A stretch of 64,000 nucleotides of DNA. Source: Neoechinorhynchus agilis. Taxonomy: Eukaryota > Animalia > Acanthocephala. Location of the stretch: the NCBI GenBank assembly GCA_051530055.1, contig CM121341.1, forward strand, positions 14,486,784 through 14,550,783, written 5' to 3'. The notes under the pieces are model-generated. The model was not told where the DNA came from. It saw only the letters and a program-made list of their open reading frames with translations, and searched no databases. Within the stretch, counting starts at the first letter, position 1; each line of letters opens with the position of its first letter. The position numbers and the translations under genes are program-made. Shown piece by piece: positions 56,923 to 62,437 of this stretch.

Positions 56923-58830
56923 AATTGATTCGGAGGAAAAAACGATATATCCGGCCGATAGCTGTGGGCTGCACTCTAAGACGGTTGGCAGGGAGGATAT
57001 TGTGCAAGCGAATGAGCGAAAGGGTGGGTGAGCAACTCCGACCTTTTCAGTTGGGTTGCTGTACTTCATGCGGAGCGGAAGCGATAGTTCACTCCACACG
57101 TACCTACATCGACGCTTGTGTCACCCCAGTGATTATCCTTAAAGTCGATTTTTCGAACGCCTTTAATACAGTCGATCGAACAGCCTTGCTAAGTACCATT
57201 GCTCGAGAATTACCTGAAGCCTATGAATACTTTGTGAAGGCGTATGGTTCTAAGACACCTCTACATTTCAACGAACATACCATTTGGTCTGAAACAGGTC
57301 TGCAACAAGGGGATCCCCTCGGTCCCATTGGATTCTCGCTAACAACCAACGGAATATCCCGCATGCTCAAGGCAAGTTTGAACGTGTAGTACCTGGATGA
57401 TGCGACATTGGGCGGTGACCCAAAGACGGTCCTAGAAGACCTGCAGTCTTTGCTCTTCTTTGCGGCTGAGTTGGGCTTACGTGTCAACCCCGTGAAATGT
57501 GAGTTATTACCGCTGAATATACCACTTTCTCACATGGCGGAAATTATCCAGTCTTTCGAATCAATTGCCCCAGAAATTCGATTAATCAACCGAGATAGCT
57601 TTAATCTTCTCGGCCGTTGCGTACTGGATGAGAACATAGATCGCGAAATCGAAGAAGAGCTACTTAAGCTAGATCTATTGTGCTCACGTGTTCAAGAACT
57701 GAACACACACGAAGCTCTCTTCTTGGTGAAGAACTGTCTATATATTCCGAAGCTGATGTTCAAGATGATTTCCAGCACACCAAACGCCTCCTTGAATTAG
57801 ATAAGTTGTTGGAAAAACATCTTGAAAAAATCACAAACTGCGCCATCACGGATGAAGCATGGTAGCAAGCTACCCTCAAGATCAATTACGGAGAATTGGG
57901 CCTCCGAGGTGTGGCTGATTTGGCTCTCCCGGCATTCATATCCTCGATGCACAAGACTAGGGATTTGCAGGGGAAAATTATTGCGGACAATAGGTCAAAG
58001 CCATGCAAACTATTGAAACAGGGAGTCACATCATGGCTCTCGCAGACCGGTCTGCAACAAGCTCCAACCAACGCGCACGAACAATCTGCTTGGGATAAAC
58101 CCTTAATCCTGACGGCTCACAACAAACTAAAAGGCCAGATGGACGAGATGTCTCAAGCTAGACTTGTGGCCAGTTCCTCGAAGGAGTCAGACGCATGGTT
58201 GAACGTTTTGCCAATTGGTACTTTGGGAACTTTGCTGGACGACGAGACAGTTCGAATAGCCGTCGCTCTACTTTTAGGACTTCCAACCTGTGCCCCACAC
58301 CAATGCCAATGTGGTTCAGAAGTCGACGAGCTCGGAAGACATGGACTCTTCTGCAAGAGGTCGACTGGTCATTTTGCGAGGCACGCGGAGCTCAACGCGA
58401 TTATTAGCAGCGCTCTGAAATCGATACACATCCCCAGCGTCTTGGAGCCAAATCATCTACGTCGCTCGGATGGTAAGCGCCCGACGGTATCACCGTTTTC
58501 CCTTGGAAAGAAGGGAAAAGTCTAATTTGGGATGCAACGTGTATCGACTCACTTGCCCCGTCAAACCGACAAGAGGCCCTAACTGAGACGGGAGGAGCGG
58601 CGAGTGCGGCCGAAAGGAGGAAAGTAGATAAATACAAAGAGCTACGACTCCTTTCGGCGTGGAAACGCAAGGGGCACAAGGATCGTCAGCACAAAACTTC
58701 TGCGCTGAACCCGGACGGCGGCTCACATCCTGCACAGGAGAGCGGCGCGAGAGGACTTTCCTAATCCAAAGGATTAGCCTCGCAATCCAACGAGGAAATG
58801 CCGTCAGCGTCCGAGGCACAATCCCAGCTT
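56923..58830 (+). mobile_element. 5'-truncated CRE-like non-LTR retrotransposon B (RT plus RLE), decayed
   Basis: IRPIAVGCTLRRL, KVDFSNAFN, GLQQGDPLGP, *YLDDATLGG, CQCG...HGLFC...RHAELN, RSDGKRP, LIWDATCIDSLAPS, QRISLAIQRGNA. In-frame stops. Confidence 0.94.
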
Positions 58831-59036
58831 AAAATAAAACACTTCTGAAAAGAAAAGAAAATTTTTCAAAATAAAAGATTGTTCATGAAAAATCGGATAG
58901 AAATTCATTTAGACAGTCGCCCGAAATTGCAGAATAATTCAAACTCGCACTTGTTTCCATAGTTACCTTGTATAGACTAGACCGTGTTAAGTTTAAATAA
59001 AAAAACCCAAAGATCGTAATCCTAAACCCCTAATCG

Positions 59037-60284
59037 ATGTCGAGATTCCTTGAATCAAAAATCATACAAATTCAATTGGGAGGCTGCGGCAACCGCCTAG
59101 GTTGTGCATACTGGAATCTTGTGATGAACGAGCACTCGATAAGTACAAAAAACGGCGATTATTTAGGAAAGGACGCCGGAAGTGATCTGGATTTGGCTAA
59201 AAGTATCTTTTACGAAGTGAATACAGTTGGTTTAGAAGCTATTCGATTCCGTCCAGCATGTATTTGTGTAGGTACCGACCAGAGTGATAACGTGACGGAA
59301 GCACTGGCTGACTATGACATCGATTGTGTTTCGAGAGATCAGATTGTTCAATTGTCCGGCAATAATGGAGACTGTAGCGATGTGGACGTAAATCCCAGTC
59401 AAATTGTGGACGCGATTCGACTCGATATTGAACGCGCCGACCACGTTGGAGGCTTTGAGTTGTTACACTCGGTTACAGGGAAATTCACAACGAATTGCAC
59501 AACGAACCTGATGACTTCTCTTAAAGACAATTATCCAAAAAAGCTCATGGTGAATGGATGCGTATTTCCGTCTTCTTCTAGACCTAGTCGAGGTCTTAAA
59601 AAAATTGGAAGTTTATCACTTCTAAAATCGCTAATTGAGCATTCAGATGGATGCTTTTTATATGACAATGAAACACTTGAGAATGTGTGGACAAGATCTC
59701 TGATGATCGATAACGTTGATCTTCAAGATCTTAATCAACTGATTGCATTTCATCTTTCCGGAATTTCGGCATCGTATCGATTGAAAGGTTCATTGAACAA
59801 ATCCTTATATAGCCTAGTAAAGAACGCCTGTCCAATTGAACAAATGCACTTCTTTCTCCCATCAATCGCGCCAATTCTAAGCCAAGAAAGTCGATTATAT
59901 GCCCGAGGAGACATTTTGGAACTGACTCGAAATTTATTTGATCGACGAAATGCACTTTTTTGCCCTAATTCGTCAAAAAGAGTCAAATATTTCGGGATGA
60001 GTGGAGTTTATAGAGGATACGCTGCAAGTCCATGGGACATTAGACGAGAAATGTATAATCTTAAAGAAAGAAGGAACTTAGTGTTTTCCAATTCAAACTT
60101 TTTATATGAACACGCTGTTGTATCGTCAACGAATCTTCCTTGCGATATCCCCATAACCGCCGCGGTTGCGTGGTCTTCAAGTGCGATTACGTCAATATTC
60201 AAGAATAGCGAATCACAGTCTGAGGACAACAATGAAGAATTGATTAAAATGCAGGAATTGTACGAACAGTGCGAAATGTTCTAA
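59037..60284 (+). CDS. Highly divergent intronless tubulin (mostly beta-like, some gamma-like residues)
   Basis: 415-aa intact ORF: IIQIQLGGCGNRLG..YW..EHSIS, GFELLHS, YPKKLM, DNETL, DLNQLI, GSLN, MHFFLPSIAP, ELTRNLFD, YRG, SSAITSIFK. Confidence 0.9.
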   Translation: MSRFLESKIIQIQLGGCGNRLGCAYWNLVMNEHSISTKNGDYLGKDAGSDLDLAKSIFYEVNTVGLEAIRFRPACICVGTDQSDNVTEALADYDIDCVSRDQIVQLSGNNGDCSDVDVNPSQIVDAIRLDIERADHVGGFELLHSVTGKFTTNCTTNLMTSLKDNYPKKLMVNGCVFPSSSRPSRGLKKIGSLSLLKSLIEHSDGCFLYDNETLENVWTRSLMIDNVDLQDLNQLIAFHLSGISASYRLKGSLNKSLYSLVKNACPIEQMHFFLPSIAPILSQESRLYARGDILELTRNLFDRRNALFCPNSSKRVKYFGMSGVYRGYAASPWDIRREMYNLKERRNLVFSNSNFLYEHAVVSSTNLPCDIPITAAVAWSSSAITSIFKNSESQSEDNNEELIKMQELYEQCEMF

Positions 60285-60379
60285 CGGATTTTTAACTAGA
60301 TTTAACAGAATAACGTCCTCTAAAATAAACATTTGAGCGAAAATAATAAACACTGATTATTAAGTGGTCTCAAATTCCT

Positions 60380-62437
60380 CCTTTTCGTCCAATTCTGCAA
60401 CTGTCGTCATGATTGTTCGGCAGCTTCCTTGATGGCCGCGGCATTGCCGCGTTAATGTGCTACATCAGGAAGCTGCTGGAGCACATGTCGCCGGTGGCAT
60501 ATTTCAGCATCTTTTAAGTCGGGAAAGGAAATAATCGGCTTCTTTTCCGAGGCATCCCAGCGCTTCCACCGCAATCGGGATGAATATATATTGATGCCCA
60601 TCGAGCGAGGAGTACTTATGCCGCTTCTTTTCCTCGCTGAAGCTGGCGACTGCTCCCGCTTTTGAGGTGGCATCCCGTAAGTGGGATGCTGCGAGCGTGT
60701 TGAGGCAAGTAAAATCCCAAACCAGTATTTTCCCAGAGCACCATGGGAGGAGAGTCGCTCCATCAGGGCGTTTACCGTCGTTCCGGGAGAGTCCGACTGG
60801 TTCGAGTCGAGCAGGAAGACCGGCCGTTGAGACGGCTTCCTTAATTATGCGGTTGACTGCTGTGTGCCGTGCGTGGCGAGCATTTGAGCGCTTGCAGTCA
60901 AGGCCGTGAATTCCCGACGTGTTCACTGTCTCACCTCACGGACATGTATATGAGCCTGAGAAATCGATGCCCAACGGAAGTCCCACAGCGACGGCGATGG
61001 CTTGGTCATTCAGCTTCGTGCCAAGAGCCGTGATCGGAAAAGCCTTCAAGAAGTCGCTGGGTGTGTAGCTGAGACTGCCGGGAGACGAGCTCTATCGGTG
61101 GGAGATGAGCATGAGTTGAGAAGCTACTGATAGGACGCAGTGTGGAGCGAGGCAGTTTAACGTTTTTGGAAGTTTGTTTCCGTTGGAACGACCTGCCCGA
61201 ACACTGATGTCCATTGAGCGTGCGCTTCAATCAGTTTAGGTGGTGGATGCGACTCTAGTCGAGTGTGTGGTGGGATGATTCCCAGCACCAGGTCTGAAGA
61301 GACCAAAATCGATGACGAAAAGGCAGGAATTTCTACTTCGGTGGCACTTTGGATGCCAAGACCGCCGAATCGAATGGGAACAATCGCATGTTTCCATGCT
61401 GTGTCGGACAGTCGTAGGTTAAGGACTTCTGACAGGGTTTATCGAACGTAGTTGTCGAAATCCCTTGTGAGCACTGACTTGAAGCATGGAGAAGTCCTCA
61501 GAAGGTAAGCGATCTTCGGTAGTGACAGACATCGTCCTAGGATGAACAGAGCGTCGTGTCGCGCGATCGATGGCTTTTGAAAGGAACGTTTCCAGGTTAA
61601 ACAGGTTACCGATTGGAGACCCGAGAATGTCAGCCCAGTCGGTTGCAGTTGTCTTTGCTCCGGGCAGTACGGTGAGCAGTCTCGATGCATCCTCTTGGTC
61701 GTTCGAAATTATTTCGCATTTGTCCGTTCTCAGGAATAGTCCGATATCGGCACCCATTTCGGAGATGTTTTTGATGTCGCGAATGAGCTGGTCGATCTCC
61801 CCTCCAATGCAATAGTCGTCGAGGTACCAGATCGATAAATCCGACGAAGAGCTGTGGGCGAGATGATTGATCGTCAATGCGAACAGCAGAGGACCTAGAG
61901 GATCACCCTGTTGAACACCCTCTGCTGATTCGACCTGGAACTCGCCAAACAGCAGCATGCTGGACTGGTCGTAGCACAAGGACACATACTGGTAGATTTC
62001 TGGTATGTGCTGGTGGACAACCTCCGTCATCTCGGTGCGGCATATTGAATTGAACGCGTTCTCCATGTCAAGCTTGACCATAGCCGTTCCCTAATTGATA
62101 CCATTTCGACTATACGCTCGTGCTGAGTGTACGACCGCCTCGGCTCCAGCAGGAACTCCGACTCCTAATTGAACCGGCAAGAGTTGATCGATCAATCGAT
62201 TGGTGGCGAACTGACATGTGACTTTGGATGCCAATCGACGGAAGGTACAACCCTTGGTGAAAGCGATCAGCTTGGTACCGCAGAGTAGACGAGCGACTGG
62301 AGGGGGTACGCGACCGCGAATGATTACGCGTGTGAGCTCGGTGATTGCGTTCAGCAATCGCGTACCTTGATCTCCAGAAGAGAGGCAGGTCAAATCCCGT
62401 AAGTGTCGAGGACTCAAACCATCATGCCCTCCAGCTG
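60380..62437 (-). mobile_element. Decayed CRE-like non-LTR retrotransposon C (RT plus RLE)
   Basis: GHDGLSPRHLRDL, QLGVGVPAGAE, KLDMENAFNS, GVQQGDPLGP, WYLDD, HGLDC...RHTAVN, RNDGKRPDG, LVWDFTCLNTLAASH. The GIRPIAV segment is deleted. Confidence 0.94.

Follow-up and report, generated by a model that had tools for sequence, protein, structure and literature searches.

Can a tubulin gene be retained after the loops that hold its nucleotide have been rewritten, and what could its product then be doing? GTP binding is considered an integral part of tubulin folding, of dimer stability and of dynamic instability, and the question is raised by a gene of the acanthocephalan Neoechinorhynchus agilis. 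It lies in a window of 64,000 nucleotides (positions 14,486,784-14,550,783 of contig CM121341.1), whose numbering is used below. Positions 59037-60284 of the plus strand of this window hold an unbroken, intronless tubulin open reading frame (ORF), 415 codons long and running from an ATG to a TAA, the product of which is referred to here as P0001. A first-pass annotation had taken it for a candidate non-GTPase pseudo-tubulin or else for an extremely diverged gamma-tubulin, and had suspected a retrogene. The reading that we prefer, with a probability of about 0.6, is that P0001 is a transcribed, long-retained, beta-like pseudo-GTPase tubulin encoded by one of three related genes of N. agilis.

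Fold and nucleotide loops of P0001

P0001 matches both Pfam tubulin domains above their cut-offs (Tubulin, residues 8-217, 83.2 bits against a cut-off of 33; Tubulin_C, residues 269-355, 37.3 bits against 26.6), which bears out the intact tubulin frame noticed at first. Its residues 8-393 align with solved beta-tubulins at E ~3e-40, the identity to canonical beta-tubulin being 23-29%. The AlphaFold2 model, built from a 57-sequence alignment, has the complete two-domain tubulin topology, with a mean predicted local distance difference test (pLDDT) score of 88.1 and a predicted template modelling (pTM) score of 0.91; the best 50 Foldseek matches in the PDB are all beta chains, with template modelling (TM) scores of 0.80-0.87.

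In canonical tubulins loop T4 grips the phosphates, T3 senses the gamma-phosphate, T2 holds Mg2+ and T5 holds the ribose, while D210/N211 and N233 contact the guanine; the T7 core G..LN of beta-tubulin reaches the nucleotide site of the subunit below. Several of these elements are changed in P0001. In alignments to beta-tubulin, T4 (residues 144-153; 59466-59495, plus strand, as for all parts of the gene) reads HSVTGKFTTN in place of HSLGGGTGSG, so that the signature [SAG]-G-G-T-G-[SAT]-G is replaced by T-G-K-F-T-T-N. Loop T3 is reduced from GAGNNWAKG to SGNN..G (residues 107-112), the whole remnant with the C-x-D-x-D that follows (residues 107-117; 59355-59387) being about 6 residues shorter than the canonical loop, and the S2/T2 stretch (residues 72-81) reads RPACICVGTD as compared with (P)RAILVDLEP. 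These replacements, listed in the first-pass annotation, are all seen in the alignments, as is the absence of an acidic tail. Considering that T5 is degenerate too, and that T2 has lost its acidic residues, four of the six nucleotide loops are altered together. The modelled T4 is well ordered (pLDDT 95-98), and lower values are obtained for T3 (~70), T5 (62) and the M-loop (67). TGKFTT is not to be read as a Walker-A motif, since the Lys is absent there from the paralogues described below.

Other elements have been retained, namely T1 (QLGGCGNRLG, residues 13-22, 59073-59102, with its GGCGN core), the guanine-site residues Asn211 and Asn233, the T7 core G..LN (RLKGSLN, residues 248-254, 59778-59798) and, by alignment to beta, an M-loop region of beta-like length (residues 275-291, 59859-59909). 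The last is 35% identical to that of beta-tubulin and lacks the 3-residue gamma insertion. T7 carries neither an acidic nor a basic residue at the positions of beta D249 and K252.

At the C-terminal end about 25 residues are gone, from the middle of helix H11 through the H11-H12 loop. The first-pass annotation had described this region as deleted; the loss stands, and H11 proves to be truncated and not wholly missing, since after S10 the model has an 11-residue helix (residues 382-392, 60180-60212), a short loop and then H12 (residues 400-414, 60234-60278). The protein ends directly after H12, before the stop codon, and has a net charge of -9 and a pI of 5.4, as against -25.6 and 4.75 for canonical beta-tubulin. 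The beta-class features absent from P0001 are the exchangeable GTP-site loops T2-T5, the full H11-H12 region and the acidic C-terminal tail. The outer face formed by H11 and the H11-H12 loop, together with the acidic tail, serves in other tubulins as a docking site for motors and microtubule-associated proteins (MAPs) and as the substrate of tail-modifying enzymes.

In FtsZ, single substitutions in the T4-type signature motif are sufficient to cripple GTP binding. Since four of the six pocket loops are changed in P0001, and since bulky residues, invariant among the three N. agilis proteins, stand at the phosphate sites, canonical use of GTP has presumably been lost. Provided that the gene is functional, we regard it as quite likely, judging from the sequence, that P0001 has lost both the canonical binding and the canonical hydrolysis of GTP, its pocket being filled, at least in part, by the protein itself. 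A non-GTPase pseudo-tubulin, as proposed in the first-pass annotation, would thus be the best reading of a degenerate nucleotide signature in a retained fold.

A family of three genes and its tubulin class

An exhaustive phmmer search with P0001 against 1.84 billion representatives returned 2390 tubulin-like matches, headed by two 'hypothetical proteins' of N. agilis: P0003 (KAL7675248.1; 466 amino acids, 37% identity, E 2e-65) and P0004 (KAL7674611.1; 592 amino acids, 38% identity, E 1e-64). The next matches are ordinary beta-tubulins (E 5e-39, ~28% identity). Both genes (L001:4001-5401, 1401 nt, and L002:4001-5779, respectively) are single-exon and have ordinary host genes, e.g. those of vinculin and histone H2A, as neighbours. 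They lie on the same 19.4-Mb contig CM121341.1 (assembly GCA_051530055.1) as the gene of P0001, the three positions being ~4.35 Mb, ~6.58 Mb and ~14.5 Mb, which hints at intrachromosomal duplication over random retroposition. A profile of the trio found no further family members among 5.8 billion proteins, and word-based homologue searches with P0001 or with the trio profile yielded only the trio and one springtail beta-tubulin, so that the family is known at present from N. agilis alone. In the maximum-likelihood (ML) tree the three proteins form a clade with support of 100/100.

The trio has 107 invariant positions, which were compared with a panel of 54 other full-length tubulin representatives, many of them aberrant protist ones (57 sequences with the trio). 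Its common T4 pattern is HS-x-[ST]-G-x-F-T. The invariant Phe150 is Thr or Ser in the other tubulins, and the invariant Thr151, corresponding to beta Gly144, is Gly in 54/54 of them; a glycine-rich T4 is kept in all but one of the 54, the exception being P0036 of Nonionella stella. Cys75, Cys154 and Trp218, also invariant in the trio, occur in no or almost no other panel tubulin, and Arg336/Arg337 of helix H10 replace residues that are mostly acidic elsewhere, i.e. the charge is reversed. As to the retained elements, the trio agrees in 90% of T1, whose G15 and G18 are invariant in 57/57 aligned tubulins, as are D210, N211 and N233; R248 and N254 of T7 are invariant in the trio. The GNN of T3 is entirely lost in P0003 and P0004, and C113, D115 and D117 are common to all three proteins.

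The rewriting of T4 is shared by genes that are now ~37% identical and is therefore older than their split; that the change is old and has been retained was missed in the first-pass annotation. The loss in H11, on the other hand, is private to P0001, since P0003 and P0004 keep the full H11 and H11'. In the model of P0003 (pLDDT 87.7) H11 is complete (377-393) and is followed by a helix resembling H11' (395-403), by a long H12 and by an extra helix (430-441), after which the tail is disordered. In both paralogues the canonical acidic tail is replaced by a long, mixed-charge, non-acidic one, which in P0004 comprises ~150 residues with many Lys, Glu and Ser.

The trio has five invariant cysteines (residues 17, 75, 113, 154 and 206; 59085-59654). 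Together with the C-x-D-x-D that replaces T3, they are all situated at the strand ends that form the former nucleotide pocket, where a metal or redox site would be conceivable.

As for the class to which the trio belongs, beta scores best throughout. With P0001 as the query, phmmer gave 144 bits for beta, 99-104 for gamma, 91 for alpha and 87 for epsilon, and the class hidden Markov models gave 233, 156, 170 and 109, respectively. For the trio as a whole, single-sequence scores are 119-144 bits for beta vs 51-104 for alpha, gamma and epsilon, and class profiles give 193-233 vs 60-170 for the other classes. Controls showed that members of alpha, gamma and epsilon, too, have beta as the closest class besides their own (ratios 1.10-1.56), and the beta-score ratio of the trio (1.39-1.52) is to be seen against 1.61-1.91 for true divergent beta-like proteins, so that a best match to beta is only moderately informative. 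The trio has none of the inserts typical of alpha (H1-S2, S9-S10), gamma (M-loop, S9-S10, H11-H12) or epsilon; a single-residue insertion near beta position 307 is common to the trio and gamma.

In the ML tree (LG+C20) the trio stands on the beta side of a branch with support of 96/94, alpha, gamma and epsilon being across it. The references of this tree covered alpha, beta, gamma and epsilon tubulins, and we use it in support of the clade of three and not as evidence for a beta origin. Approximately unbiased (AU) tests rejected neither trio+gamma (delta lnL 1.9, p 0.40) nor trio+alpha (p 0.46); the phylogeny called for in the first-pass annotation thus secured the clade and did not settle its place among the classes. 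No delta- or zeta-labelled representative is present among the best 150 matches, Misat_Tub_SegII and Tubulin_3 find no match in P0001 at E<=1, and protein-atlas features do not discriminate, the clusters of gamma, epsilon, beta and delta scoring 0.91 alike. The trio is beta-like and probably beta-derived, the AU tests leaving room for grouping with gamma or alpha.

Transcription, constraint and genomic setting

Four runs of one 2025 study (X1-X4) hold the locus, and their contigs were compared over 58000-61300. In each run a single colinear contig, jointless and unspliced, covers the whole ORF: 58757-60400 in X1 (depth 76), 59014-60400 in X2 and X3 (329 in each) and 58965-60374 in X4 (24). In X2 and X4 the depth falls to zero in the neighbouring intergenic bins. 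The contigs of each run total 15-23 Mb, less than the genome (46 Mb), and the public RNA set of N. agilis is poly-A directional mRNA-seq from 74 single male and female worms (PRJNA1223661); for these two reasons we take the runs to be RNA, and the gene appears to be transcribed in all four. Lack of expression, which the first-pass annotation had named as an argument against a functional gene, is therefore not what the contigs indicate. The 14-fold spread of depth among individual worms is compatible with a sex or size bias, contig depth being a poor measure.

The X3 contig begins right after an Illumina read-2 adapter sequence of 24 nt, with the junction exactly at 59014, which implies that many fragments end there. 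Given the orientation of a dUTP-directional library, this junction would correspond to a plus-strand RNA with its 5' end 23 nt before the ATG, i.e. to a leader at 59014-59036 with a probable start at 59014/59015. A spliced leader was sought at the 5' end of the transcript and none was seen; the contigs contain no intron. The contig of X1 reaches 257 nt further upstream (58757-59013), into the end of the upstream retroelement, with differences at 58816, 58820 and 59013, so that some individuals may use an alternative or a read-through start. At the other end the 3' untranslated region (60285-60400) has AATAAA at 60324-60329 and 60345-60350; the contigs pass both signals and continue into the downstream element at its antisense end, entering the repeat at 60371 and ending ~30 nt inside it at 60400 in three runs and at 60374 in X4. 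Loose ends of other copies of this repeat begin at 60371 in all four runs.

Was the frame kept open by selection? Each pairwise comparison within the trio shows saturation at synonymous sites. Between P0003 and P0004 the nonsynonymous divergence (dN) is 0.28 and omega, its ratio to the synonymous divergence (dS), is ~0.14 by LWL85; between P0001 and either paralogue dN is ~0.70. The dN/dS check proposed in the first-pass annotation is saturated, and it does not isolate the branch of P0001 itself. That branch is the shortest in the trio by the ML tree (0.65 vs 1.09 plus 0.25-0.34). When neutral substitution of the coding sequence was simulated, the trials in which the frame stayed open made up 52% at 1% divergence, 4% at 5% and 0.1% at 10%; with indels at one-tenth of the substitution rate it survived in 0.04% at 5%. 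Since a neutral frame decays by ~5% divergence and dS is saturated, we infer long constraint on the gene, with purifying selection during nearly all its history, a very recent release aside. The view that an unbroken ORF at this divergence implies selection is supported both by this simulation and by the flanks of the ORF, where the longest stop-free runs are 219 and 273 amino acids. The ORF is identical in X1-X3, and X4 has a single A>G at 59410, changing Asp125 of helix H3 to Gly (D125G).

The decayed transposable elements reported on both sides of the gene are real: they are reverse-transcriptase remnants of the non-LTR (non-long terminal repeat) kind with broken frames, outside the gene, at 56925-58525 on the plus strand (RVT_1 E 3.6e-12 on 56925-57386) and at 60371-62081 on the minus strand (RVT_1 E 5e-13 on 61422-62081). 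They are convergent, their 3' ends pointing toward the tubulin gene, and ~1.5 kb of unique DNA separates them. Retroposition of the gene, suspected in the first-pass annotation, would agree with the absence of introns from all three paralogues and with the colinear contigs; neither a poly(A) remnant nor a target-site duplication is visible at the locus, and no A-run follows the 3' untranslated region. At such high divergence a poly(A) remnant is not to be expected in any case. The C-terminal ORFs of the two elements (57896-58525, plus strand, and 60504-60926, minus strand) have a common Cys/His-rich motif with no Pfam match. Within the downstream element one X2 contig skips 63 nt (60454-60516, with ends AA..TA) and one X1 contig has GGA for 49 nt (60735-60783), which looks like variation between repeat copies; a clean hairpin was looked for in the 63-nt piece, and only a partial stem was found (z -1.9).

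Alternative readings, possible role and known systems

The evidence has to be weighed against three other explanations. P0001 might still bind GTP, GDP or another ligand through a compensated pocket and polymerise as an unusual beta isotype: T1 is largely preserved, the guanine-site residues D210, N211 and N233 are those of every tubulin aligned, and T4 is modelled as ordered, retains one Gly along with hydroxyl residues and offers new Thr, Ser and Lys side chains. However, Thr occupies the place of beta Gly144 and Phe that of Thr143, and the acidic residues of T2 have been lost with T3, T4 and T5; we consider such an isotype unlikely. Somewhat less probable is a recently inactivated or functionless retrocopy, transcribed only on account of its place between retroelements and open by luck. 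Its intronless state between two reverse-transcriptase remnants, the start of the X1 contig within the end of the upstream element, the private 25-residue deletion in H11, the nonsynonymous polymorphism and the want of orthologue evidence would all fit this view, but a neutral frame would be open in only 4% of cases at 5% divergence, as against saturated divergence from the nearest paralogue. The short branch of P0001, its confidently predicted fold, a discrete 5' end 23 nt upstream of the start codon, a depth that reaches 329 and the absence of a poly(A) remnant speak against it as well.

Least probable of all is the third explanation, by which P0001 would be a gamma-tubulin of extreme divergence, or would stand in for one in the worm, and would act in nucleation. 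It could draw on the AU test (p 0.40) and on the insertion shared near beta position 307, yet the alpha grouping is equally unrejected, which deprives that test of positive weight. Gamma scores are 40-80 bits under those of beta for all three genes, the M-loop, S9-S10 and H11-H12 are without the gamma insertions, and beta is the best class by sequence, class profile and structure. The gamma-like words QLG, EHSIS, YPKKL and KERR, on which the first-pass annotation had relied, consequently carry no weight, and the gamma assignment is not upheld.

The pseudo-GTPase reading has points against it, too. The only polymorphism seen in the ORF among four individuals, D125G, is nonsynonymous; the trio is without orthologues, and the signal of selection does not reach the recent branch of P0001. 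The runs were typed 'RNA?' by guess, and their contigs give neither strand nor expression level. Conservation of T1, Asn211 and Asn233 means that a nucleotide or another ligand could still bind, and the mode of action described below is only read off the loops that were kept or lost.

If P0001 is a pseudo-GTPase tubulin, it would neither bind nor hydrolyse GTP in the canonical manner, and its pocket would be partly occupied by its own side chains, e.g. those of the invariant Phe150 and Thr151. Through the retained contact loops it could still make tubulin-type contacts and might act as a nucleotide-independent, non-dynamic subunit, whether a static lattice element, an end cap or a regulator that binds tubulin or chaperones. 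Having neither the outer H11/H11-H12 surface nor a tail, it would render its assembly 'blind' to motors, MAPs and tail-modifying enzymes. The charge reversal at R336/R337 of H10 suggests that the surface for the longitudinal partner is altered too, in which case pairing of paralogue with paralogue may be envisaged. A bolder proposal would make the trio a new class-level tubulin lineage, private to acanthocephalans, that builds a nucleotide-free assembly of its own, e.g. from heterodimers of P0001 with P0003 or P0004, forming a cap or a static polymer that might belong to the sperm flagellum. Two ancient sub-lineages, a T7 kept in all and the reversed charge of H10 would fit such pairing; we deem this proposal quite unlikely as a whole. 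As to the site of action, acanthocephalans retain motile cilia in sperm only. Male-biased transcripts of N. agilis are enriched for microtubule terms (PMC12690905), and these two observations make a role of P0001 in the male germ line or the sperm flagellum plausible, as a reasonable guess and no more.

Our search of the literature found no animal tubulin without the signature, no precedent for a signature-less or pseudo-GTPase tubulin and no mention of these genes, which is not proof of absence; supplements of the N. agilis transcriptome and the text of other acanthocephalan papers contained no tubulin data. If the pseudo-GTPase reading is true, an animal lineage with three such retained genes would be a natural experiment on the use of a tubulin body without nucleotide, be it as a cap, a static lattice element or a tubulin- or chaperone-binding regulator, and could reveal how the fold stays stable with its pocket empty or self-filled. 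Being parasite-specific, the three genes may also interest those who seek selective targets in an aquaculture pest, N. agilis being a parasite of fish.

Among known systems, canonical beta-tubulin (beta chains of PDB 5iyz and 4tv8) is the nearest. It is the best match in sequence, profile and structure and has in common with P0001 the complete fold, a T1 with Cys, the DN and LN base contacts, the G..LN core of T7, the beta-length M-loop and the S9-S10 loop; P0001 differs in the rewritten GGGTGSG, T2, T3 and T5, in the loss of half of H11 and of the acidic tail and in the change of two acidic H10 residues to Arg. P0003 and P0004 share its chromosome, intronless structure and T4 pattern, but they are only 36-38% identical to it and have full H11/H11', long mixed-charge tails and a more degenerate T3. 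Gamma-tubulin resembles P0001 in the tubulin fold, a non-lattice role is conceivable, and the AU test does not reject their grouping; P0001, however, scores lower against gamma and lacks the gamma insertions and the tubulin signature motif. Misato/DML1 is a eukaryotic relative within the tubulin superfamily with degenerate GTP motifs, whereas P0001 matches plain Tubulin and Tubulin_C and not Misat_Tub_SegII or Tubulin_3. The type 2 beta-tubulin of foraminiferans is lineage-specific, strongly diverged and linked to non-standard assemblies (PMC4990898). The foraminiferan protein P0036 is beta-like with a degenerate T4 (AGYVGNFSG) and T3, the only such case among the 54 representatives; it comes from a protist and is much nearer to beta (411 bits vs 144 for P0001), and no relationship is implied. 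Finally, septin pseudoGTPases are members of a cytoskeletal GTPase family in which nucleotide binding or hydrolysis has been lost and which are kept in the assembly as structural subunits (PMC10731463); their fold is unrelated, and they may serve as a conceptual analogue of P0001 in mechanism only.

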